Of a stretch of DNA of 64,000 bases, positions 10,516 to 54,700 are shown one piece after another (the stretch's first letter is position 1; the number at the start of each line of letters is the position of its first letter). Under the pieces are notes generated by a model. It worked only from the letters and a program-made list of their open reading frames with translations. It was not told where the DNA came from and did not search any database. This DNA is from Haliotis cracherodii (lineage: Eukaryota): positions 682,001 to 746,000 of the forward strand of contig NW_027266297.1 of assembly GCF_022045235.1 (NCBI RefSeq), read 5' to 3'. The translations under genes and the position numbers were made by a program.

Positions 10516-13500
10516 GTAAGTAAACAATGTTGATTTCCTGAAACCTTTGTCGCTTTTGGAAAACATGAACCATTTGTAACCATGGTAACACACAGAATAT
10601 ATAATAGTAGCATATTGAACCAGACAGTTGTGGGTAAAAAAGTATCCACGCTGAGTAATATCCCTGTAAATAAGTAGATTTGTCAGAAAGTGAGAAAAAT
10701 AACAAGTATGTGTTTCCCAATAATCAGAGACATCACTCCAGTAAATGTAACCTGAAACCTTCATGCCAGGTAGGAGCTTCTACACCTGTTCTGTGTCGCC
10801 ATAAGCTAAGGGTGGTTTCATCATTAGTTAATCTGCACCAGTGCACTGATATGACATCATGTTGTTAAAGAATGTTCCAGTCAGTAGGACAAAATAGTAG
10901 TTGTAACGTAGCTAATCAACATGAAGCAAAATGGCTGTCAGTGACCGAAAATAATTGCCCCGATATTCATGCCCATATGGGAAGTGTTCACGTGCATGCA
11001 CGCAGTCACCTTGTGTTACAGTTATAATTACATTCAACTGAGTATGACAACTTGGTAAATATCCCAGAAAATGTCCAGGGACTCCACAGAGTTGTGTCAC
11101 AACTACCACAAGTTTGTTGAGTATTCATTTATTGCAGCTAAAGGAGTCCTACTTTTACATTAACCAGTGAGGGCAGATAGGTGTAAGTATGAATCGCTGG
11201 GCAGAGATTGGTTTGGGTCAGCCCTGGGTCACAAGCAACAATGTCTGGGTCTTAGACGAGTATAGGGAATGACATCCTGATTCTAATGATGAAAGTCTTG
11301 TAACATAATTCAGCAGCTCTTCAGTTGGCATGGTTACTGAATGAAATAACCCTACTTTCTCTAAGATTTTAAAAACATTTTATCCTTTAAAAGTCAAGAT
11401 TACTGTTATTATTTTTTTAAGATTGAAATTAATATGATTAATATATATAACTATATATGTTTACACTTCTTTGATCATTGTTGATTACAGAAAGAGCATT
11501 AGTGTTTAAGATCAGGTGTGAAATGTTGTAATTGAATTGTAACACAGAGTTTTTGGAAATTGACTCCTTGAAAAGCTGCATAAACAACAGTTGACCCTGG
11601 CTGAATAGGTTGTAGCTGTGTGTATGAAGTCTACTGGTTGTAGCTGTGTGTATGAAGCCTACTGGTTGTAGCTGTGTGTGTGTTGTATGAAGTCTACTGG
11701 TTGTAGCTGTGTGTATGAAGCCTACTGGTTGTAGCTGTGTGTGTGTTGTATGAAGTCTACTGGTTGTAGCTGTGTGTGTGTTGTATGAAGTCTACTGGTT
11801 GTAGCTGTGTGTGTGTTGCAGGTGGCAGCTACTACTCCGGACAAGAACCTCGGCCGGACTATGAGTTCAATGTGTGGACAAAACCTGACTGTGGAGGCAC
11901 TGAGTTTGAAAATGGGAACAGGTAGGAGGAATTGAACAGGTTCAGTTAGCATGATTGGGATTTAGGAGAAAATATCTCATGGGTTCATTGTCATGACAAA
12001 TAAGAGCAAGTGTTATTATCAACTAATGCTTTATCATGTTTGTATGTGAAGTATTTGTATCATTTTGCAATGGTTCAGTGCCATCGCCTAGTTTCTCAAA
12101 GCAATCTCAGCACTACGTTGGCTGTTACTCATATACTTAAACATGGACTTAACATAATGTAATAGATGTACGACAGTCATAGTGCTAAGATTGCTTTGTG
12201 GAACTGGACGCATGTAATTGAAAAATAAACTTTACAAAATGACATTGGGAGCTTAAACCATGTCAAAGTTGGACTGTTTCCCTGTCAAATGTTTTCCATC
12301 CTTGTGTTGTCATCTTGTTGCAGATCCTGGTTCTACTTTGGGGTCCGAGGCTGGAACCCGGGTCGCCTCATCAAGATCAACGTGATGAACATGAACCGGC
12401 AGGGCAAGCTGTACAGCCAGGGTCACACCCCACTTGTACGCATCCTCCCCAACAGACCAAAGTGGGAACGCATCAGAGACCGGCCATCTTATGAGGTAAA
12501 TGGGAATTTCTTGGCTGAAAGGGAAAATCAGTTAGTGATACTGACGGCTTCTCGACTCACTGTGTATGAACCAGGTGAAGAATTTAAGGACTACGAGGGC
12601 TATGGTATTTGCTCTTGTGTTATGAATATTCATATTATTTGAATTAAATTGTTGTTTAACGGAACAAACATCTTGATAAATCAGATCACTCTTCTGAAAT
12701 GTCTGAAATGCATTCCACCCCCTGGGCACGTGGGTGACAGCAGGGCACGTGTGTAACAGTAGGGCACGTGAGTGACAGCAGGGCACGTGGGTGACAGCAG
12801 GGCACGTGGGTGACAGCAGGGCATGTGGGTGACAGCAGGGCACGTGTGTAACAGCAGGGCAAGTGGGTGACAGCAGGGCACGTGTGTAACAGCAGGGCAT
12901 GTGGGTGACAGCAGGGCACGTGGGTGACAGCAGGGCACGTGTGTAACAGCAGGGCAAGTGGGTGACAGCAGGGCACGTGTGTAACAGCAGGGCATGTGGG
13001 TGACAGCAGGGCACGTGTGTAACAGCAGGGCAAGTGGGTGACAGCAGGGCACGTGTGTAACAGCAGGGCATGTGGGTGACAGCAGGGCATGTGGGTGACA
13101 GCAGGGCATGTGGGTGACAGCAGGGCACGTGGGTGACAGCAGGGCACGTGTGTAACAGCAGGGCAAGTGGGTGACAGCTGGGCACGTGTGTAACAGCAGG
13201 GCATGTGGGTGACAGCAGGGCACGTGTGTAACAGCAGGGCAAGTGGGTGACAGCAGGGCACGTGTGTAACAGCAGGGCATGTGGGTGACAGCAGGGCAAG
13301 TGGGTGACAGCAGGGCACGTGTGTAACAGCAGGGCATGTGGGTGACAGCAGGGCATGTGGGTGACAGCAGGGCATGTGGGTGACAGCAGGGCACGTGGGT
13401 GACAGCAGGGCACGTGTGTAACAGCAGGGCAAGTGGGTGACAGCAGGGCACGTGTGTAACAGCAGGGCACGTGTGTAACAACAGGGCACGTGGGTGACAG

Positions 13501-16500
13501 CAGGGCACGTGTGTAACAGCAGGGCACGTGTGTAACAGCAGGGCATGTGGGTGACAGCAGGGCACGTGGGTGACAGCAGGGCACGTGGGTGACAGCAGGG
13601 CACGTGTGTAACAGCAGGACACGTGGGTGACAGCAGGGCACGTGGGTGACAGCAGGGCACGTGTGTAACAGCAGGGCACGTGGGTGGCAGCAGGGCACGT
13701 GGGTGACAGCAGGGCACGTGTGTAACAGCAGGGCACGTGGGTGACAGCAGGGCAAGTGGGTGACAGCAGGGCACGTGGGTGGCAGCAGGGCAAGTGGGTG
13801 ACAGCAGGGCATGTGGGTGACAGCAGGGCAAGTGGGTGGCAGTGGGTGACAGCAGGGCACGTGGGTGACAGCAGGGCACGTGGGTGACAGCAGGGCACGT
13901 GGGTGACAGCAGGGCACGTGGGTGGCAGTGGGTGACAGCAGGGCACATTGGTGGCAGCAGGGCAAGTGGGTGACAGCAGGGCAAGTGGGTGACAGCAGGT
14001 GGGTGACAGCAGGGCACGTGGGTGATAGCAGGGCATGTGGGTGACAGCAGGGCACGTGGGTTACAGCAGGGCATGTGGTGACAGCAGGGCATGTGGTGAC
14101 AGCAGGGCATGTGGGTGACAGCAGGGCATGTGGGTGAAGGCCCCCCTCACCCATTCATGATCGAGCATACATAGAAAGAAGGTTGCTACTGTGACAGATA
14201 ACTTTATGCTTTAACACAGTGGATAAATTTTGAAATGTTTAACTTCTTGCTATACAACTATCAATGAAAGTTGAAATTTACAAAAACAAAAGGTATTTTC
14301 ATAATTCAAAAATTCCATGATGAACATTGTAAAGAAGTTCCATTCAAATGAAGGAATGATCAGTGGAATGTTGGTGGCTGTCTGATGGATGTATCATATG
14401 TTTGGTCTCCAGACGGTGGATGGTCAGTTTATCCTGAGCTTCAGCTACCGGTTCCCGGACATCAAGGGAGCGACGGTGTACTTCGCCTTCAGCTACCCCT
14501 GGTCTTACACCGAGTCCCAGGACAGGCTGACCGAACTCGATAAAAAGTTTGAACATTGCAAAAACCTCAGCCCTGACAGGTAGGTAGTCAAAGGTGTCTT
14601 TCTGAAGTCTGTCGGTAGATTAAAGTCTACGCATAGTTTAAACATGGATATTGCTCCAGACCAGTGCCCTTGAGCCTTTCCTCACACAATAGGTTCACAC
14701 GCCGTGATATGACTGAACTATTGTTAAAGTCATCATTGAAACCAGACTGAAATGAAAGAAAATTTTCTAGAAATGGGCTTTTATCTATTGGCTAAAGTGT
14801 CAGACTGGTTCAGTTACAGTGTACAACATTAAGTACTGCATGCAGAACATGTTCACCTTCCTTTGTGTTATCGGTTGTAGCCGACCTGACTCCATCTACT
14901 ATCATCGAGAACTTCTGTGTAAATCTCTGGACAACCTGCGGGTGGACCTCATCACAGTCACGTCTTGTCACAAGCTCTGCTCACAGCGGGAACCCAGATT
15001 TGACGGCAAACTGTTTCCTGACAAGGCCACGCCCAGATGTAGACAGTTCAAAGGCAAACGGGTGAGAGAAGTTGTCTGTCATCAGTGTACTGATTTGGTA
15101 TGATATCACAGTTGTATTCATTGTACTGATTGGCTATGATATCACAGTTGTATTCAGTGTACTGATTGGCTATGATATCACAGTTGTATTAAGTGTACTG
15201 ATTGGGTTTGATGTCACAATTGTATTCAGTATACTGATTGGGTACGATGTCATAGCTGTATCCAGTGTTATGATTGTATGATGTCACAGTTGTATTCAGT
15301 GTAATGCTTGGGTATGATGTCACAGTTGTATGCAGTGTAATGATTGGGTATGATACCACAGTTGTATTCAGTGTAATGATTGTATGATATCACAGTTGTA
15401 TTCAGTGTACTGATTGTATGATATCACAGTTGTATTCAGTGTTATGATTGATGTAACAGTTGTATTTAGTGTAATGATTGGGTATGATGCCACAGTTGTA
15501 TTCAGTGTAATGATTGTATGATATCACAGATGTAGTCATTGTAATGATTGTATGATGTGACAGTTGTATGCAGTGTAATGATTGACTATGATGTCACAGT
15601 TGTATTGAGTTCAGTGGTTGGGTATGATCTTACAGTTGTATTCAGTGTAATGATTGGGTATGATGTCACAGTTGTATTCAGTTCAGTGATTGGGTATGAT
15701 CTTACAGTTGTATTTAGTGTAATGATTGGGTTTGATGTCACAGTTGTATTCAGTATAATGATTGGGTTTGATGTCACAGTTGTATTTAGTGTAATGATTG
15801 GGTATGATGTCACAGTTGTATTCAGTATAATGATTGGGTATTTTGTCACTGTTGTATTCAGTGTAATGATTGGGTATGGTGTCAGTTGTATTCAGTTTAA
15901 TGATTGGGTATGATATCACAGTTGTATTAAGTGTTAAGATTGATGTTTTTAGTGTAATGATTGGGTATGATGTCATAGTTGTATTCATTGTAATGCTTGT
16001 TTATGATGCCACAGTTCTGTTCAGTGTTAAAATTGACTGTGATGTCATAGTTGTATTCAGTTTAGTGATTGGGTATGGTGTCACAGTTGTATTGAGTGTA
16101 ATGATTGGATGTCCCAGTTGTATTCAGTGTTATGATTGACTATGATGTCCCAGTTGTATTCAGTGTTATGATTGACTATGATGTCCCAGTTGTATTCAGT
16201 TTAGTGATTGGGTATGATGTCACAGTTGTATTCAGTTTAGTGATTGGGTATGATGTCACAGTTGTATTCAGTGTAATGATTGGATGTCACAGTTGTATTC
16301 AGTTTAATGTTTGAATATGATGTCGCAGTTGTATTCAATGTAATGAATGATGTCACAGTTGTATTCATTTTAATGATTGACTATGATATCACAGTTTTAT
16401 TCAGTGTACTGATAACAAGTTATCCAGGTGTATTTACTGAGGAGTTATTTGTCATTCCAGGTGTATTTACTGAGGAGTTATTTGTTGTTCCAGGTGTATT

Positions 16501-19500
16501 TACTGAGGAGTTATTTGTTGTTCCAGGTGTATTTACTGAGGAGCTATTTGTCGTTCCAGATGTATTTACTGAGGAGTTATTTGTTCTGCCAGATGTATTT
16601 ACTGAGGAGTTATCTGTTGTTCCAGGTCTATTTACTGAGGAGTTATTTGTTCTGCCAGATGTATTTACTGAGGAGTTATCTGTCGTTCCAGGTGTATTTA
16701 CTGAGGAGTTATTTGTTGTTCCAGGTGTATTTACTGAGGAGTTATTTGTTGTTCCAGGTGTATTTACTGAGGAGTTATTTGTTCTGCCAGATGTATTTAC
16801 TGAGGAGTTATCTGTCGTTCCAGGTGTATTTACTGAGGAGTTATTTGTTGTTCCAGGTGTATTTACTGAGGAGTTATCTGTCGTTCCAGGTGTATTTACT
16901 GAGGAGTTATTTGTTGTTCCAGGTGTATTTACTGAGGAGCTATTTGTCGTTCCAGATGTATTTACTGAGGAGTTATTTGTTCTGCCAGATGTATTTACTG
17001 AGGAGTTATCTGTCGTTCCAGGTGTATTTACTGAGGAGTTATTTGTTGTTCCAGGTGTATTTACTGAGGAGTTATCTGTCGTTCCAGATGTATTTACTGA
17101 GGAGTTATTTATTCTGCCAGATGTATTTACTGAGGAGTTATCTGTCGTTCCAGATGTATTTACTGAGGAGTTATTTGTTGTTCCAGGTGTATTTACTCAG
17201 GAGTTATTTGTTGTTCCAGATGTATTTACTGAGGAGTTATCTGTCGTTCCAGATGTATTTACTGAGGAGTTATTTGTTGTTCCAGGTGTATTTACTGAGG
17301 AGTTATTTGTTCTTCCAGGTGTATTTACTGAGGAGTTATTTGTTGTTCCAGGTGTATTTACTGAGGAGTTATTTGTTGTTCCAGGTGTATTTACTCAGGA
17401 GTTATTTGTTCTTCCAGGTGTATTTACTGAGGAGTTATTTGTTCTTCCAGATGTATTTACTGAGGAGTTATTTGTTGTTCCAGGTGTATTTACTGAGGAG
17501 TTATTTGTTGTTCCAGATGTATTTACTGAGGAGTTATTTGTTGTTCCAGATGTATTTACTGAGGAGTTATCTGTCGTTCCAGATGTATTTACTGAGGAGT
17601 TATTTGTTGTTCCAGGTGTATTTACTCAGGAGTTATTTGTTCTTCCAGATGTATTTACTGAGGAGTTATTTGTTGTTCCAGGTGTATTTACTGAGGAGTT
17701 ATTTGTTGTTCCAGGTCTATTTACTGAGGAGTTATCTGTCGTTCCAGGTGTATTTACTGAGGAGTTATTTGTTGTTCCAGGTGTATTTACTGAGCAGTCG
17801 TGTTCATCCAGGGGAAACACCGGCAAGTTTTGTGTTTAATGGATTCTTGGATTTTATCTTGCGAGAAGATGACTGTCGAGCTCAACAGCTACGTAAACAG
17901 TATGTGTTTAAACTGATACCGATGCTGAATCCGGACGGGGTGATGCGAGGTCACTACAGGACTGACCAGCGGGGCGTCAACCTGAACCGCATGTACCTTG
18001 ACCCAAGTTTCACCCTCCATCCATCCATCTACGCTGCGAAGAGCGTCATCATCTACCACCACGTCCACAACCGCATCAAGAAAGAGGGTGACCTGTCTGA
18101 CATTCAGGTCAACTTCCCACAGGGAGAACTTGTGTCTAGTCCACAGCGACCAGCAACACGTACCCCGAGGCTCAACCTGTCAGGTCAGGGGGAAGCCCTG
18201 AGTTCTCGGACACTGGTCGGAGCTGACCCTCTCTCGTCAAGGACGCCGGGCAGTGGTGCTACAACTGTTGTGATCAGAGACCGTGTTGAACCAGTGGACA
18301 GTCATCGAAGTGACCGGAATCCGGGCGGAAGTGAGGCCACATGGCTTCATGAAACGAACAAGCTGCCCACGCTTGATGTTGAAGGACTAGACTCAAGTCA
18401 CATGGATTCAGCTCAACCAAAGTCATTTCAGATTGAACCTCTGAACCTTGCAGATCTTGACGGGACAGACACATCATTGAGCGATGGTGGACTGGCTCCG
18501 GACACCATGCCTGCCAACCACGTGTCGTCTTCATGTTGTAGTGTACTCAGTAATCTCGACATGACCAAAGACCAGCGCCGCGTGGACAGCGAGTTGAGAC
18601 TCCGCCTGTCAGAACTGAACATGTCAGATGACTTCCGATGTGATGGTGGCCCGGCCAATGAGTTGATGGCTGATACAGATGATGAGGGTGATGGAGACAC
18701 AGACAACCTTGGCAACGAAGGGTCGGAGGATGAGGGGGCCGTGTACGTCACTAGCACTAACTCCCCTCATCTGTCAGATCCGAAACTCAAAGAGATTCCT
18801 CCTCATGAGAGTGGGATAGCTTTTTATGTGGATTTACATGGGCATGCGTCGAAACGAGGCTGCTTCATCTACGGCAACTACTATGAGAATGAAGATACTC
18901 AGGTGAGCTGCGACTGCTTCTTATTATGATCATGCTCAGTGCACTAGGGTCATGATGATGGTGAGTTTTGCTTATGAGTGTAAAAAGATCCATGTTTTCT
19001 TGGTAACATATTCCGTGTTACACATCCGTGGTTCCTGGGGTGCTTCAGGTCAACTCTTGTAGTGTTGGAATCTTGACACCCTAAATTTAAAACTTTCAAC
19101 ATTAGGTTTATGGAGCGGCCCATTGACTTGTTTGCATATTTTCAAACACTGCTTGATATTGTCTGCTCTTCTGTGTGGAACTGACATGTCCTTAGTTAAT
19201 ATACAGTGTCAGGTCATGTAAGTCGGTAAAATCTGTTGTTCTAAGACATACAAAAAAGTATTGTTTAGGATGAAAAGTTAAGATTAATTTGTTCTCATTT
19301 TCTGACTTTGGAGAAAGTCCAACATGTCTGAAGCTTAAAAGGTTCCTTTGGTCAGGTGAGCTATGCTAATAATCATCCTCATATTCACAATAAAATCTAC
19401 TGGAAATGGAGTCACGAGACAGGTTCGGTCTGTAGTAGACTCAGAAGTTTCTATGGCAAACTGTTGAGGGAGGCAGGCATCTTTGTAAGATTCTTTTTTA

Positions 19501-22500
19501 TTGATCATTTGATGTGGAAAAGACAGCTTCTCTCCATGAGGACTGACAAGCAGGACAATAGTCTTCATCTATTATGTGTTTCTGACTGTAACCATGTGTA
19601 TCTGACTGTAACCATGTGTATCTGACTGTAACCATGTGTATCTGACTGTAACCATGTGTTTCTGACTGTAACCATGTGTATCTGATTGTAACCATGTGTA
19701 TCTGACTGTAAGCCATATGTATCCGACTGTAGCCATGTATCTGACTGTAACCATGTGTATCTGACTGTAACCATGTGTTTCTGACTGTAAGCCATGTGTA
19801 TCTAACTGTAACCATGTGTATCTGACTGTAAGCCATATATATCTGACTGTAGCCATGTATCTGACTGTAACCATGTGTATCTGACTGTAACCATGTGTAT
19901 CTGACTGTAACCATGTGTTTCTGACTGTAACCATGTGTATCTGATTGTAACCATGTGTATCTGACTGTAAGCCATATGTATCTGACTGTAGCCATGTATC
20001 TGACTGTAACCATGTGTATCTGACTGTAACCATGTGTTTCTGACTGTAAGCCATGTGTATCTGACTGTAACCATATGTATCTGACTGTAAGCCATATGTA
20101 TCTGACTGTAGCCATGTATCTGACTGTAACCATGTGTATCTGACTGTAACCATGTGTATCTGGCTGTAACCATGTGTTTCTGACTGTTAGCCATGTGTTT
20201 CTGACTGTAACCATGTGTATCTGACTGTAACCATGTGTATCTGACTGTAACCATGTGTTTCTGACTGTAAGCCATGTGTACCTGACTGTAGCCATGTATC
20301 TGACTGTAACCATGTGTATCTGATTGTAACCATGTGTACCTGACTGTAACCATATGTTTCTGACTGTAAGCCATGTGTTTCTGACTGTAACCATATGTAT
20401 CTGACTGTAACCATGTGTATCTGACTGTAACCATGTGTATCTGACTGTAACCATGTGTATCTGACTGTAACCATGTGTATCTGACTGTAACCATGTGTTT
20501 CTGACTGTAACCATGTGTATCTGACTGTAACCATGTGTATCTGATTGTAACCATGTGTATCTGACTGTAACCATGTGTTTCTGACTGTAACCATGTGTAT
20601 CTGACTGTAACCATGTGTTTCTGACTGTAACCATGTGTATCTGACTGTAACCATGTGTTTCTGACTGTAACCATGTGTATCTGATTGTAACCATGTGTAT
20701 CTGACTGTAAGCCATATGTATCCGACTGTAGCCATGTATCTGACTGTAACCATGTGTATCTGACTGTAACCATGTGTTTCTGACTGTAAGCCATGTGTAT
20801 CTGACTGTAACCATGTGTATCTGACTGTAAGCCATATGTATCTGACTGTAGCCATGTATCTGACTGTAACCATGTGTATCTGACTGTAACCATGTGTATC
20901 TGACTGTAACCATGTGTTTCTGACTGTTAGCCATGTGTTTCTGACTGTAACCATGTGTTTCTGACTGTAACCATGTGTATCTGACTGTAACCATGAGTAT
21001 CTGACTGTAACCATGTGTTTCTGACTGTAAGCCATGTGTATCTGACTGTAGCCATGTATCTGACTGTAACCATGTGTATCTGACTGTAACCATGTGTACC
21101 TGACTGTAACCATGTGTTTCTGACTGTAAGCCATGTGTTTCTGACTGTAACCATATGTATCTGACTGTAACCATGTGCTTCTGACTGTAAGCCGTATGTA
21201 TCTGACTGTAACCATGTGTATCTGACTGTAACCATGTGTTTCTGACAGTAAGCCATGTGTATCTGACTGTAACCATGTGTATCTGACTGTAACCATGTGT
21301 TTCCGACTGTTAACCATTTGTATCTGACTGTAACCATGTGTATCTGACTGTAACCATGTGTATCTGTCTGTAACCATGTGTTTCTGACTGTAAGCCATGT
21401 GTTTCTGACTGTTACCATGTGTATCTGACTGTAACCATGTGTATCTGACTGTAACCATGTGTTTCTAACTGTAAGCCATGTGTATCTGACTGTAGCCCAT
21501 GTATCTGACTGTAACCATGTGTATTTGACTGTAACCATGTGTTTCTGACTGTAACCATGTGCTTCTGACTGTAACCATGTGTATCTGACTGTAACCATGT
21601 GTATCTGACTGTAACCATGTGTTTCTGACTTTAAGTCATGTGTATCTGACTGTAGCCATGTATCTGACTGTAACCATGTGTATCTGACTGTAACCATGTG
21701 TATCTGACTGTAGTCATGTTTCTGACTGTAGTCATGTTTCTGACTGTAACCATGTGTATCTGACTGTAACCATGTGTTTCTGGCTGTAAGCCATGTGTAT
21801 CTGACTGTAACCATGTGTATCTGACTGTAGTCATATTTCTGACTGTAACCATGTGTATCTGACTGTAGCCATGTGTATCTGACTGTAACCATGTGTATCT
21901 GACTGTAACTGTTGTTATCGCCAGGTTGAAAACATGATGTTCCCAAAGTTGATCTCCATCAACACAGCACACTTTGACTTCACGGGCTGCAACTTCTCGG
22001 AGCGGAACATGTACTCGAAGGACAGGCGTGATGGGATGTCCAAAGAAGGCAGCGGCAGAGTCGCTGTGTTCAAGGCTATTGGCATCATACACAGGTGAGT
22101 TGGGAATCTATTCTACCCTGAAGTCCCCACAGGGGAGAAGTAAGTACTTGAGTGTGATCCTTGTACTGATTCTAGGAAATGAGTGTTAGTGTGTCATAAA
22201 TACATTTCTGACACAAGTTTAGTTTGGGATATCAAAAGCAACATACATGATATCATAACTGTTTACGTCATCAGTGCTGTGTATGTCGTGTGTATTGTTA
22301 TCGATGTCAACAGTGGCCTCTGCATGACGTCATCAGTGCTGTGTATGTCATGTGTATTGTTATCCATGTCAACAGTGGTCTCTGCATGACGTCATCAGTG
22401 CTGTGTATGTCATGTGTATTGTTATCCATGTCAACAGTGGCCTCTACATGACGTCATCAGTGCTGTGTATGTCGTGTGTATTGTTATCCATGTCAACAGT

Positions 22501-34108: not shown

Positions 34109-37100
34109 GTAACCACTGGTAGTTGTGTGGCTGCTACTATAGTGTGGCCAGCAGTAGGTGTGTGGCTTCTAGTATCATGTAACCAGCTGTAGTTGTGTGG
34201 CTTCTAGTATCATGTAACCAGCTTTAGCTGTAGCTGTGTGGACGCTAGTATCAGGTAACCAGCGGTAGTTGTTTGGCCTCTAGTATAATGTAACCAGCTG
34301 TAGTTGTTTGGCCGCTAGTATCAGGTAACCAGCTGTAGTTGTGTGGACGCTAGTATCATGTAGTCACATGTAGTTGTGTGGCTGCTAGTATAGTGTAACC
34401 AGCAGTAGTTGTGTGGACGCTAGTATAGTGCAACTAGCTGTAGTTGTGTGGATGCTAGTATCATGTAGTCACCTGTAGTTGTGTGGCCGCTAGTATAATG
34501 TAGCCAGCTGTAGTTGTGTGGCTTCTCGTATTGTGAAACCAGCTGTAGCTCTTGGGCTGCTTGTATAGTGTAACCAGCTGTAGTTGTGTGGCCTCTAGTA
34601 TAGTGTAACCAGCTGTAGTTGTGTGGCCGCTAGTATAGTGTAACCAGCTGTAGTTGTGTGGCTTCTAGTATCATTTAACCAGCTGTAGTTGTGTGGCCGC
34701 TAGTATAGTGGAACCAGCTGTAGTTGTGTGGCCGCTAGTATAGTGTAACCAGCTGTAGTTGTGTGGCCGCTAGTATAGTGTAACCAGCTGTAGTTGTGTG
34801 GCCGCTAGTATAGTGTAACCAGCTGTAGTTGTGTGGCCGCTAGTATAGTGTAACCAGCTGTAGTTGTGTGGCTTCTAGTATCATTTAACCAGCTGTAGTT
34901 GTGTGGCCGCTAGTATAGTGTAACCAGCTGTAGTTGTGTGGCCGCTAGTATAGTGTAACCAGCTGTAGTTGTGTGGCCGCTAGTATAGTGTAACCAGCTG
35001 TAGTTGTGTGGCCGCTAGTATAGTGTAACCAGCTGTAGTTGTGTGGCCGCTAGTATGGTGAAGCCAGCTGTAGTTGTGTGGCCGCTAGTATAGTGTAACC
35101 AGCTGTAGTTGTGTGGCCGCTAGTATAGTGTAACCAGCTGTAGTTGTGTGGCCGCTAGTATAGTGTAACCAGCTGTAGTTGTGTGGCCTCTTGGGCTGCT
35201 TGTATAGTGTAACCAGCTGTAGTTGTGTGGCCGCTAGTATAGTGTAACCAGCTGTAGTTGTGTGGCCGCTAGTATAGTGAAGCCAGCTGTAGTTGTGTGG
35301 CCGCTAGTATAGTGTAACCAGCTGTAGTTGTGTGGCTTCTAGTATCATTTAACCAGCTGTAGTTGTGTGGCCGCTAGTATAGTGTAACCAGCTGTAGTTG
35401 TGTGGCCGCTAGTATAGTGTAACCAGCTGTAGTTGTGTGGCCGCTAGTATAGTGTAACCAGCTGTAGTTGTGTGGCCGCTAGTATAGTGAAGCCAGCTGT
35501 AGTTGTGTGGCCGCTAGTATAGTGTAACCAGCTGTAGTTGTGTGGCCGCTAGTATAGTGAAGCCAGCTGTAGTTGTGTGGCCGCTAGTATAGTGTAACCA
35601 GCTGTAGTTGTGTGGCCGCTAGTATAGTGTAACCAGCTGTAGTTGTGTGGCCGCTAGTATAATGTAACCAGCTGTAGTTGTGTGGCCGCTAGTATAGTGT
35701 AACCAGCTGTAGTTGTGTGGCCGCTAGTATAGTGTAACCAGCTGTTGTTGTGTGGCTTCTAGTATCATTTAACCAGCTGTAGTTGTGTGGCAGCTAGTAT
35801 AGTGTAACCAGCTGTAGTTGTGTGGCCGCTAGTATAGTGTAACCAGCTGTAGTTGTGTGGCCGCTAGTATAGTGTAACCAGCTGTAGTTGTGTGGCCGCT
35901 AGTATAGTGTAACCAGCTGTAGTTGTGTGGCCGCTAGTATAGTGAAGCCAGCTGTAGTTGTGTGGCCGCTAGTATAGTGTAACCAGCTGTAGTTGTGTGG
36001 CCGCTAGTATAGTGTAACCAGCTGTAGTTGTGTGGCCGCTAGTATAGTGTAACCAGCTGTAGTTGTGTGGCTTCTTGGGCTGCTTGTATAGTGTAACCAG
36101 CTGTAGTTGTGTGGCCGCTAGTATAGTGTAACCAGCTGTAGTTGTGTGGCCGCTAGTATAGTGAAGCTAGCTGTAGTTGTGTAGCCGCTAGTATAGTGGA
36201 ACCAGCTGTAGTTGTGTGGCTTCTAGTATCATTTAACCAGCTGTAGTTGTGTGGCCGCTAGTATAGTGTAACCAGCTGTAGTTGTGTGGCCGCTAGTATA
36301 GTGTAACCAGCTGTAGTTGTGTGGCCGCTAGTATAGTGTAACCAGCTGTAGTTGTGTGGCCGCTAGTATAGTGTAACCAGCTGTAGTTGTGTGGCCGCTA
36401 GTATAGTGAAGCCAGCTGTAGTTGTGTGGCCGCTAGTATAGTGTAACCAGCTGTAGTTGTGTGGCCGCTAGTATAGTGTAACCAGCTGTAGTTGTGTGGC
36501 CGCTAGTATAGTGTAACCAGCTGTAGTTGTGTGGCTTCTTGGGCTGCTTGTATAGTGTAACCAGCTGTAGTTGTGTGGCCGCTAGTATAGTGTAACCAGC
36601 TGTAGTTGTGTGGCTGCTAGTATAGTGAAGCCAGCTGTAGTTGTGTGGCCGCTAGTATAGTGTAACCAGCTGTAGTTGTGTGGCCGCTAGTATAGTGTAA
36701 CCAGCTGTAGTTGTGTGGCCGCTAGTATAATGTAACCAGCTGTAGTTGTGTGGCTTCTTGGGCTGCTTGTATAGTGTAACCAGCTGTAGTTGTGTGGCCG
36801 CTAGTATAGTGTAACCAGCTGTAGTTGTGTGGCTTCTAGTATCATTTAACCAGCTGTAGCTGTGTGGCCGCTAGTATAGTGTAACCAGCTGTAGTTGTGT
36901 GGCCGCTAGTATAGTGAAGCCACCTGTAGTTGTGTGGCTGCTAGCATCATGTAACAGGCTGTAGTTGTGTGGACGCTGGTATCATGTAGTCAACTGTAGT
37001 TATGTGGCCGCTAGTATAGTGTAACCAGCTGTAGTTTTGTGGACGCTAGTATAGTGAAGCCACCTGTAGTTGTGTGGCTGCTAGCATCATGTAACAGGCT

Positions 37101-38730
37101 GTAGTTGTGTGGCCGCTGGTATCATGTAGTCAACTGTAGTTATGTGGCCGCTAGTATAGTGTAACCAGCTGTAGTTTTGTGGACGCTAGTATAATGTAGT
37201 CACCTGTAGTTGTGTGGCCGCTGGTATGACATAACCAGCTGTAGTTGTGTGGACGCTCGTATCATGTAGTCAACTGTAGTTTTGTGGATGCTAGTATCAT
37301 GTAGTCACCTGTAGTTGTGTGGCCGCTGGTATGATGTAACCATCTGTAGTTGTGTGGACGCTCGTATCATGTAGTCAATGGTAGTTATGTGGCCACTAGT
37401 ATAGTTTAACCAGCTGTAGTTGTGTGGACGCTAGTATCATGTTGTCACCTGTAGATGTGTGGCAGCTAGCATCATGTAACCAGCTTTTGTTGTGTGGCAG
37501 CTAGTATCATGTAACCAGCTGTAGTTGTGTGGCAGCTAGTATCATGTAACCAGCTGTAGTTGTTTGGCAGCTAGTATCATGTAACCAGCTGTAGATGTGT
37601 GGCCGCTAGTATCATGTAACCAGCTGTTGATGTGTGGCCACTAGCATCATGTAACCAGCTGTAGTTGTTTGGCAGCTAGTATCATGTAACCAGCTGTAGA
37701 TGTGTGGCCGCTAGTATCATGTAACCAGCTGTTGATGTGTGGCCACTAGCATCATGTAACCAGCTGTAGTTGTGTGGCCGCTAGTATCATGTAACCAGCT
37801 GTAGTTGTGTGGCAGCTAGTATCATGTAACCAGCTGTAGTTGTTTGGCAGCTAGTATCATGTAACCAGCTGTAGATGTGTGGCCGCTAGTATCATGTAAC
37901 CAGCTGTTGATGTGTGGCCACTAGCATCATGTAACCAGCTGTAGTTGTTTGGCAGCTAGTATCATGTAACCAGCTGTAGATGTGTGGCCGCTAGTATCAT
38001 GTAACCAGCTGTTGATGTGTGGCCACTAGCATCATGTAACCAGCTGTTGATGTGTGGCCACTAGCATCATGTAACCAGCTGTAGTTGTGTGGCCACTAGC
38101 ATCATGTAACCAGCTGTAGTTGTGTGGCCACTAGCATCATGTAACCAGCTGTAGTTGTGTGGCCACTAGCATCATGTAACCAGCTGTAGTTGTGTGGCCG
38201 CTAGTATCATGTAACCAGCTGTAGTTGTGTGGCCACTAGCATCATGTAACCAGCTGTAGTTGTGTGGCCGCTAGTATCATGTAACCAGCTGTAGTTGTGT
38301 GGCCGCTAGCATCATGTAACCAGCTGTAGTTGTGTGGCCGCTAGCATCATGTAACCAGCTGTAGTTGTGTGGCCACTAGCATCATGTAACCAGCTGTAGT
38401 TGTGTGGCCACTAGCATCATGTAACCAGCTGTAGTTGTGTGGCCACTAGCATCATGTAACCAGCTGTAGTTGTGTGGCCACTAGCATCATGTAACCAGCT
38501 GTAGATGTGTGGCCACTAGCATCATGTAACCAGCTGTAGTTGTGTGGCCACTAGCATCATGTAACCAGCTGTAGTTGTGTGGCCACTAGCATCATGTAAC
38601 CAGCTGTAGTTGTGTGGCCACTAGCATCATGTAACCAGCTGTAGATGTGTGGCCACTAGCATCATGTAACCAGCTGTAGTTGTGTGGCCGCTAGTATCAT
38701 GTAACCAGCTGTAGTTGTGTGGCCGCTAGT
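34109..38730. repeat. 35-bp minisatellite, ~130 copies (4.6 kb)
   Basis: Unit GTAACCAGCTGTAGTTGTGTGGCCGCTAGTATAGT; a TATAGT-variant domain is followed by an ATCAT-variant domain. Confidence 0.97.
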
Positions 38731-43794: not shown

Positions 43795-44362
43795 AATTTC
43801 TCTTTTCACAGACACGTTGATCATCAATACCTACACACTGCTATTTCTCTGTTTACAGACACATCATCAATACCTACACACCGCTGTTTTTTTGTTCTCA
43901 CACATTATCAATACCTAGACACCACTATTTCTTTGTTCTCACACATTATCAATACCTACACACACACACACTATTTCTCTGTTCACAAACACATTTTCAA
44001 TACCTACACACCACTATTTTTTTGTTCTCACACATTATCAATACCTAACACACACACACACACACACTATTTCTCTGTTCACAGACACATCATCAATACC
44101 TACACACACACTATTTCTCTGTTCACAGACACATCATCAATACCAACACACCTCTATTTCTCTGTTCACAGACACATCATCAATACCAACACACCTCTAT
44201 TTCTCTGTTCACCGACACATCATCAATACCAACACACCTCTATTTCACTGTTCACAGACGTATTATCAATACCAACACACCTCTATTTCTCTGTTCACAG
44301 ACACATCATCAATACCTACACACCGCTATTTCTCTGTTCACAGACACATCATCAATACCTAC
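43795..44362 (+). repeat. ~43-bp minisatellite of duplicated acceptor junctions, ~13 copies
   Basis: Unit CTATTTCTCTGTTCACAG|ACACATCATCAATACC(T/A)ACACAC; the last copy continues into a unique exon-like sequence. Confidence 0.9.
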
Positions 44363-51724: not shown

Positions 51725-54700
51725 CTGAAACAAACAAAATTAAATATGTGACGGGTCCAACTTCAAAGTTAAGTAAAACTCCATTCACATGGATGCATCA
51801 TCAGACCCACCATGGTATTACAAGCATACGTTGCTGACTAGAAGCATACGTTGCTGACTACAAGCATACGTTGCTGACTACAAGCATACGTTGCTGACTA
51901 CAAGCATACGTTGCTGACTACAAGCATACGTTGCTGACTACAAGCATATGTTGCTGACAGTAACCTGCGTCCCAAGCTCAGTGATGTCTTACACAGAACA
52001 AGACTATAGTCACAACACATGCATGTCGGTCCCAAGGGTCAACCTCCAGGGAACGTGTTCTCACTGTGGTCCCTCATGACCAACCGCCCCACACCCCTCT
52101 ACAATCAGCGTACCTCTGTACTGTTGGCATCAACAACCACCCCACACACCCCTACAATCAGCGTACCTCCATACTGTTGGCATCAACAACCACCCCACAC
52201 ACCCCTACAATCAGCGTACCTCCATACTGTTGGCATCAACAACCACCCCACACACCCCTACAATCAGCGTACCTCCATACTGTTGGCATCAACAACCACC
52301 CCACACACCCCTACAATCAGCGTACCTCCATACTGTTGGCATCAACAACCACCCCACACACCCCTACAATCAGCTTACCTCCATACTGTTGGCATCAACA
52401 ACCACCCCACACACCCCTACAATCAGTGTACCTCCATACTGTTGGCATCAACAACCACCCCACACACCCCTACAATCAGCGTACCTCCATACTGTTGGCA
52501 TCAACAACCACCCCACACACCCCTACAATCAGCGTACCTCCATACTGTTGGCATCAACAACCACCCCACACCCCTCTACAATCAGTGTACCTCCATACTG
52601 TTGGCATCAACAACCACCCCACACACCCCTACAATCAGCATACCTCTGTACTGTTGGCATCAGCAGCTGGTTTGTCATGGCCGTTCTGTTTGGGGGCATC
52701 TCCTGAGCCATCTTCCTGCCGAGATTTCTTCGATTCAGGGTCATCTGCATCCTCGTCAGGTTTACGCTTGAAATATACCAGACACCGTTTCATTTCTATC
52801 ACAATGTGGAGAGAACACCAACATGGCACAGGTCTACATTCTTAAAGACATACTGAGAATGATAATGGTGGCATATTAGGGAGATTCAAACATATAAGGT
52901 ATGGATCCTAACATGACAGGCACATAACTGACTAACAAAGTGCTGCCACCTGGTGTGTGTGGTCGTAAGTGAACAATGAGTTGTATCAGATAAGAACTGG
53001 CGAAGATTGCTGCCTGGAAGCCTGGGGTATTTTATTAGTGAAATCTAGATGCTTGTGAGAATCCCTACAAATGTGATCATGTCAACCTACCTTCCTCCTG
53101 ATGAGATGGCTGATGTCAGAGGCTTTCTTCACTTCAATCTGGAACACAACATGAGACATGGAACAACATGAGACGTGGAACAACATGAGACGTGGAACAA
53201 CATGAGACGTGGAACAACATGAGACGTGGAACAACATGAGACGTGGAACAAGATGAGACTCGGAACAACAAGAGACGTGGAACAACATGAGACTCGGAAC
53301 AACATGAGACGTGGAACAACATGAGACGTGGAACAACATGAGACTCGGAACAACATGAGATGTGGAACAACATGAGATGTGGAACAACATGAGACGTGGA
53401 ACAACATGAGACGTGGTACAACATGAGACGTGGAACAACATGAGACGTGGAACAAAACATGAGACGTGGAACAAAACATGAGACGTGGAACAAAACATGA
53501 GACGTGGAACAACACGAGATGTGGAACAACATGAGACGTGGAGCAAGCCATGAGGTGACAAACATCAACCCCAACTATCAGTGCAACGATGTCTGGAGAG
53601 TTAATGTTAACAGTGTTTAGTCAACTCACTGAGGTCAGTGATCCAAGCCCAAACTGGCCAGCTCCGTTCACCAGGTAAATAGCACTTACACCCATGTATG
53701 GAGTTGCCAGCTCCGTTCACCAGGTAAATAGCACTTACACCCATGTATGGAGTTGCCAGCGAGGTTAACCAGCACTCACACCCATGTGTGGAGTTGCCAG
53801 CGAGGTTAACCAGCACTCACACCGATGTGTGGAGTTGCCAGCGAGGTTCACCAGCACTCACACCCATGTGTGGAGTTGCCAGCTCCGTTCACCAGGTAAA
53901 TAGAACTCACACCCATGTGTGGAGTTGCCAGCTAGGTTCACCAGCACTCACACCCATGTGTGGAGTTGCCAGCTCCGTTCACCAGCAATCACACCCATGT
54001 GTGGAGTTTCCACCTAGAAACTAATCAAACTGGGATTCGAACCCACAATCATAGGTTTCTGGGGCATGCCCAAGGGACGTAACTCTGCACAGAGAATCAC
54101 AGCGCCTTACATGTTGATTTATTTGTCACATTAAGAAGCAGTTTTTTAAATGAGGCCGTAAGAGTTTAGTCCGGGCCTGAAGTTTGTTGTTTATTTCACA
54201 CTGCACTCAGCAATATTCCAGCTATATGATGGCAGTCTGTAAATAATCAAGTCTGGACCAGACAATCCAGTGATTGATACCATGAGCATCGATCCACATA
54301 TTTGGAGTACGATGACATGCATCAACCAACGGGTCCAGGGCCTGAACAGAACAGTGTGGGTCCTGATGGCAGCCAGGCAGTTTAATTTTATTTCAAACAC
54401 TGGTGCGCCGCTCAGAGACAGGACCGTCAGATTGGAGCTACAAGACATGCTCACTCCTCACACTCACCGGGGTTGCTGCTGTCGTCGTTTCACTGGTTGA
54501 CGTAAACTGAAGCAAGATTTGAAGACAAGATTTACAACATCCATTAGCAAACATCTCAACATTTGAACCAATTTCACAATATTTACGTTTCTTATTGAGC
54601 ATTGGCCGATCCTCAAAGTTCGACCATTGAAATCCCTACCTATATAAACCTAGAAGAAAAGCAGGTCCAACAACAGAAAGAAGAAAACAGCCTTATTACT

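Follow-up and report, generated by a model that had tools for sequence, protein, structure and literature searches.

We analysed a stretch of 64,000 nucleotides (nt) from Haliotis cracherodii (contig NW_027266297.1, positions 682,001 to 746,000 of the forward strand), which we call the window and whose first letter is position 1 in the coordinates below. It contains a gene that, judged from its translated sequence, is cytosolic carboxypeptidase 5 (AGBL5/CCP5), a member of the M14 family. Intron 5 of this gene ends in a tandem array with a 33-bp unit that copies the splice acceptor of coding exon 6. The array, and the choice among its acceptors, are the subject of this text; an earlier note on the same DNA had described it as a ladder of duplicate acceptors and had made several claims about its use.

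A model of 16 exons joined across GT-AG introns of the window translates to a protein that agrees at every residue with XP_071118890.1, the isoform X2 (1196 amino acids (aa)) of CCP5 in H. cracherodii, and it does so only if exon 6 starts at 17781. The closest protein matches of the exon 6 translation are CCP5 sequences across molluscs. It shares 99% identity with CCP5 of Haliotis rufescens and is found as an exact match inside H. cracherodii isoforms, while the H. rufescens isoform compared does not contain it exactly. The Pfam domain PF00246 (Peptidase_M14) matches residues 3-73 of exon 6, and the claim that this exon leads into the M14 zinc-binding HxxE was correct; the motif is conserved in all homologues that we saw. 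A weak match to PF18027, the CCP N-terminal domain, falls in exon 3. In genome-wide searches of the H. cracherodii assembly (1.18 Gb, 80 contigs) CCP5 is present as a single copy. The features around intron 5 are as follows (a slash marks an exon-intron or exon-exon boundary here and below):

14881-15061, forward strand: coding exon 5 of CCP5, which ends in phase 0 at AAACGG/gtgaga, the intron 5 donor (from the exact spliced model).
15082-16413, forward strand: an older minisatellite, 36 bp x 37, in the 5' half of intron 5, starting 21 nt past the donor (Tandem Repeats Finder: 77% matches, 8% indels).
16428-17780, forward strand: the 33-bp x 41 minisatellite; each unit joins the 14 nt of the exon 6 start to the 19 nt of the intron end (CCAG).
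17778-17780, forward strand: the authentic acceptor CAG, which is the final CAG of the array.
17781-18902, forward strand: coding exon 6, 1122 nt or 374 codons, starting with VYLLSS (spliced model and Pfam).
17805-17816, forward strand: HPGE, the zinc-binding HxxE motif within the M14 carboxypeptidase domain (translation and Pfam).

Anatomy of the acceptor array

Intron 5 (15062-17780) consists almost wholly of the 36-bp and the 33-bp minisatellites. Tandem Repeats Finder places the latter at 16423-17798, with a period of 33, 41.7 copies, 92% matches and 0% indels. Registered on the true acceptor, the array resolves into 41 complete gap-free units (41 x 33 = 1353 nt), every one of which has CCAG as its last letters. 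The final unit ends at 17780 and the exon begins at 17781, so the array directly adjoins exon 6. A further CAG lies just 5' of unit 1 (16425-16427), which gives a total of 41 decoy CAGs besides the real acceptor. The first 14 nt of the unit are identical to the start of exon 6, and the likeness extends to 18 nt with one mismatch. The composition of the unit from 19 nt of intron end and 14 nt of exon start, the exact spacing and the CAG in every copy are thus just as the earlier note had described them.

The units fall into 15 sequence variants, and 12 units have the sequence of the final one. Some short successions of unit types (BCD and GBI are examples) recur within the array and point to unequal exchange of several units at a time. 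The units begin with GT in 25 of 41 cases and with AT in the remaining 16; the real exon also has GT directly after the CAG.

The exon frame is open throughout the array (no stops; open reading frame 16428-18929) and all upstream CAGs are in this frame, which bears out the claim that splicing to any of them would lengthen the protein by n x 11 residues and introduce no stop. However, two of the three frames are open across the array, therefore the open exon frame is unremarkable for a unit of 33 nt. Similarly, 24 of the 33 unit positions are invariant, and the chance that three given positions, such as those of the CAG, are all invariant is about 0.37. We considered the invariant CAG and the open frame as signs of selection and rejected both as uninformative.

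The last element of interest is the branch point. Each unit holds the branch-point-like motifs TTTAC and CTGAG, 24 and 20 nt before its own CAG, and the idea that a copy supplies the branch point for its acceptor is a reasonable one. When the machinery scans for a 3' splice site, an AG only 4-8 nt past the branch adenosine is too close to be used. The only AGs between these motifs and the CAG lie at just this distance from the adenosine of TTTAC. In summary, as a repeat the array far exceeds what chance would give, yet it is ordinary for the window, of which 45% is minisatellite.

Acceptor use at exons 6 and 15

Which of the acceptors are used can be read, to some extent, from annotated proteins. 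The junction of exons 5 and 6 reads FKGKR/VYLLSS in all 21 RefSeq CCP5 isoforms from four Haliotis species (4 in H. cracherodii, 8 in H. rufescens, 7 in H. rubra and 2 in H. asinina), and we were not able to find the peptide encoded by the repeat unit in any of the 21. At the level of annotation, all transcripts accordingly join 15061 to 17781, an outcome that the earlier note had named. A HMMER search of 1.84 billion representative proteins did not find the array peptide either: it returned only unrelated repeat proteins with a best identity of at most 51%, three of which share a 5-mer with the array peptide by chance. In a second homologue search, Haliotis fragments of 206-655 aa were absent from the homologues of exon 6.

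The same gene offers an internal control further downstream:

43796-44362, forward strand: a 43-bp x 12.8 acceptor ladder that copies the acceptor and the start of coding exon 15, with eight ACAG/ copies.

If exon 14 is joined to the copy at 43859, the product is exactly the RefSeq isoform X1, and with the final copy at 44344 it is X2; the H. cracherodii isoform X1 ends inside the 43-bp array. The H. rufescens isoforms X1 and X2 have 129 extra residues (for X1, in comparison with X3), which equals 9 x 43 nt in frame, and X1 contains repeated blocks of 43 residues. Two copies are thus annotated at the exon 15 ladder, and therefore ladder use can be annotated in this gene; at exon 6 no such use is annotated. 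Regulated alternative 3' splice sites would show as the use of more than one exon 6 site, which we see in none of the 21 isoforms, unlike at the exon 15 ladder.

We consider it probable that the array is a tolerated, locus-specific minisatellite of the "mirage" type described below, and that its final copy is the acceptor in use. A segment of 33 bp that straddles the acceptor of CCP5 intron 5 would first have undergone tandem duplication, and unequal exchange or slippage would later have raised the number of units to 41. When an acceptor is duplicated in this way, exon 6 remains joined to an intact copy, and the gene would stay functional provided that splicing picks the exon-proximal copy; the upstream copies would then be silent intronic decoys. 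Directly after the acceptor the real exon 6 reads GTGTATTTACTGAGC, and the decoy copies read GTGTATTTACTGAGG, GTCTATTT or ATGTATTT. Past +14 the real exon contains purines and has a T content of 31%, compared with 43% in the decoys, and what follows each decoy is a further U-rich acceptor unit, with no usable donor. Up to +14 decoys agree with the real site, and no RNA structure is predicted to hide the array; what sets the real site apart should therefore lie downstream of +14. We infer that the final copy is chosen through the real exon sequence from +15 onwards (exonic enhancers, lower U content) together with definition across the exon, and that the array has no regulatory role, being neutral or slightly deleterious. 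For the biology of CCP5, the likeliest outcome is no effect.

Several observations sit uneasily with this explanation. The silence of the upstream acceptors is evidence at the annotation level only. Reads across junctions into near-identical units map to multiple places, pipelines may drop them, and minor in-frame isoforms could be missed in this way. Moreover, 17 of the 21 isoforms come from the other three Haliotis species and may say nothing on the array. Between -63 and +14 (63 nt upstream and 14 nt downstream, up to 77 nt), four decoys do not differ from the real site at any position, and the decoys themselves hold nothing that would explain their own silence. The array RNA folds worse than shuffled sequences (z = +2.0), so the decoys are not predicted to be hidden; a masking of the decoys by RNA structure was rejected on this result. 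Finally, an exon of 1122 nt is long for classical exon definition.

Some of these observations would fit an appreciable share of transcripts that use upstream acceptors and escape nonsense-mediated decay (NMD) with insertions of n x 11 residues before the HxxE, so that array length determines how much of the CCP5 is inactive or altered. Each of the 41 upstream CAGs keeps the exon frame and no stop intervenes, the decoys equal the real site over a long distance, folding predicts an open array RNA, exon 15 of the same gene makes use of ladder copies, and multi-mapping could mask such junctions in the annotation. On the other hand, the unit is found in no annotated isoform and in no database protein, and normal splicing has been published for the mirage and F7 arrays (PMC3087553, PMC1557585). 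In a single-copy gene for a conserved protein, a heavy loss to insertion isoforms should also be selected against. With equal use of the 42 acceptors, no more than ~2% of the mRNA would be canonical, and CCP5, being single-copy and conserved, could therefore hardly afford such use. We regard upstream use in an appreciable share of transcripts as unlikely. Still less likely, in our view, is that the spliceosome reads the ladder such that a measurable share of transcripts starts exon 6 upstream, with NMD-immune insertions, and that a hypervariable array length acts as a heritable dial on active tubulin deglutamylase. If this were true, abalone genes would carry many such dials. Of the two alternatives in the earlier note, the choice of the last acceptor agrees with the 21 isoforms, while the tuning of active deglutamylase by array length found no support.

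Splicing could also proceed stepwise, from exon 5 to a unit of the GT type, whose regenerated 5' splice site would be spliced again until the real exon is reached and the final mRNA is canonical. The GT directly after the CAG in 25 units and in the real exon would allow this. The earlier note had spoken of CAG/GT units as possible recursive splice points: the motif is there in 61% of the units and missing in the 16 AT-type units (39%), which would trap an insertion. Besides, the regenerated site CGG/GTGTAT agrees with only 6 of 9 positions of the CAG/GTAAGT consensus (mismatches at -2, +4 and +5). The chance that the units serve as recursive splice points therefore appears very slight. Nearly as improbable is an artefact of assembly, in the copy number or in the array as such. 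It is true that long tandem arrays are prone to misassembly, but the 15 unit variants stand in a non-periodic order with zero indels, no gaps and no N, dozens of comparable arrays are found across the window, and the flanks fit the RefSeq gene model exactly.

Origin of the unit and other arrays of the window

The tolerated minisatellite, as we see it, arose at this locus. In the 1.18 Gb assembly the 33-bp unit is confined to CCP5, with one outside match of 74% identity that is at chance level. This match lies on contig C56 (69527500-69531500, positions 1741-1837) in an array of 18 bp x 5 that shares the 15-mer CAGGTGTATTTACTG, and one shared 15-mer is about what chance predicts for 1.18 Gb. 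An array of 49 bp x 41 adjoins the 18-bp array there. A dispersed repeat family was rejected as a source, since the sole outside match is a different array with one 15-mer in common. We found no alternative haplotig of the 33-bp array in the one assembly searched. Nor could we show a common origin with the 36-bp array in the same intron, the alignment score of the two being no higher than that of shuffles (P = 0.17).

Dozens of CCP5 exon fragments from other animals start with the pattern Q/V[YF]x[LV][ST]S followed by RVHPGE, where the Q is the in-frame acceptor CAG, and none of these fragments has upstream repeats. The exon start and the position of the intron are conserved without the repeats, therefore both are ancestral and the array copied them. 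As an alternative, the unit could have been founded from the first 31 nt of the exon, for which there is a weak additional match (TGTTCATCCAG and TGTTGTTCCAG, P ~0.02). However, the upstream flank of the array (AAGTTAT..CCAG) resembles the intron part of the unit, and for this reason we favour a founding duplication that would have spanned the exon-intron boundary.

Tandem arrays with periods of 17-172 bp account for the 45% of the window mentioned above and for 64% of the CCP5 intron bases. Their edges lie at most 25 nt from a splice site in 7 cases, compared with 0.37 expected under random placement, and much of this excess would follow from arrays arising in introns that were once short. 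We count three boundary-copying arrays in CCP5: those at the acceptors of exons 6 and 15, and one at the donor of exon 14.

34109-38730, forward strand: a 35-bp x 131 array that starts exactly at the exon 14 donor CAG/GTAACC and holds 98 GTAAC copies.

Most of the GTAAC copies in this array have T instead of G at position -1, and CAG/GTAACC is kept in only 2 decoys. Other arrays of the window lie near splice sites of CCP5 or outside it. An array of 20 bp x 117 (19574-21909) stops 16 nt short of the acceptor of exon 7, and CTGAC, which fits the branch-point consensus perfectly, occurs in it 103 times. Another one, 63 bp x 3 (11617-11818), stops 4 nt short of the acceptor of exon 2 and has units with TTGTAG motifs that resemble acceptors. 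In an array of 53 bp x 11 (52081-52662) the reverse complement of AG/GTACGC is present in each unit read (51960-52260), and this array is apparently a donor ladder in the neighbouring NASP gene on the minus strand.

Comparison with known splice-site arrays

Two well-known classes of splice sites invite comparison with the CCP5 array. Ratchet sites have a strong regenerated 5' site and are conserved, and NAGNAG acceptors lie 3 nt apart and share one branch point. Like the former, the CCP5 array places CAG directly before GT, and like the latter it offers several AGs for one intron. Unlike in ratchet sites, the regenerated site in CCP5 is weak and 39% of the units lack the GT; unlike in NAGNAG acceptors, each unit has a branch-point-like motif of its own.

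Much closer are the tandem repeats that span exon-intron boundaries in amphioxus Adh3. They are called "mirages", with units of 10-72 bp, in the passage of PMC3087553 that cites Canestro et al. (2002, NAR). The amphioxus globin genes BflGb6 and BflGb9 also have mirages, and they were found to be spliced regularly by reverse transcription polymerase chain reaction (PMC3087553). In BflGb6, as in CCP5, the unit consists of the 3' end of an intron together with the 5' portion of the following exon, so that both arrays are on the acceptor side. In both systems many units keep AG/GT and the authentic copy is next to the exon. On its sequence, the CCP5 array is a mirage in structural terms: its units stand in tandem, they combine exon and intron parts with a splice signal, and the authentic copy is the exon-proximal one. 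The differences are in scale and in setting. BflGb6 has 3-6 copies of units of 150-160 bp, whereas CCP5 has 41 of 33 bp and belongs to a mollusc rather than to amphioxus. In contrast to the amphioxus mirages, every decoy in CCP5 is in frame and stands before a catalytic motif. Length instability is documented for the amphioxus mirages, while the CCP5 array is known from one assembly.

A second parallel comes from the human F7 gene, where a 37-bp variable number of tandem repeats in intron 7 (IVS7) places 5-9 copies of identical donors after exon 7, of which only the exon-proximal one is used (PMC1557585). The F7 pseudo-sites are functional when tested, and no secondary structure explains the choice (PMC1557585). 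In F7 as in CCP5, the authentic site lies in the exon-proximal unit among identical copies, with no structural explanation. However, F7 is a case on the donor side with 5-9 copies and has been tested experimentally, with minigenes, whereas CCP5 is a case on the acceptor side with 41 copies, known from sequence. Furthermore, the model proposed for F7 is scanning from 5' to 3', and among acceptors such a scan would prefer the first copy over the last.

Internal tandem repeats also lie at exon-intron boundaries in human segmental duplications, where minisatellite expansion changes exon or intron structure and can activate cryptic sites (PMC2812944). In human paralogues, minisatellites at a boundary can even give rise to introns (PMC2812944). 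For these human repeats there are often transcripts of both forms, whereas for exon 6 of CCP5 only the canonical form is annotated.

The phenomenon as such is therefore already described, in the amphioxus mirages and in human F7, and the CCP5 array is a mollusc case of it. What the array adds is a natural experiment in the choice of a 3' splice site, with 41 decoys in one intron, any misuse of which would give a stable in-frame product. Should the last copy be the sole one in use, the acceptor must be selected by information downstream of +14 or by its position. Boundary-copying minisatellites appear to be frequent in the abalone genome, and they would extend the amphioxus mirages to molluscs with many replicate cases.

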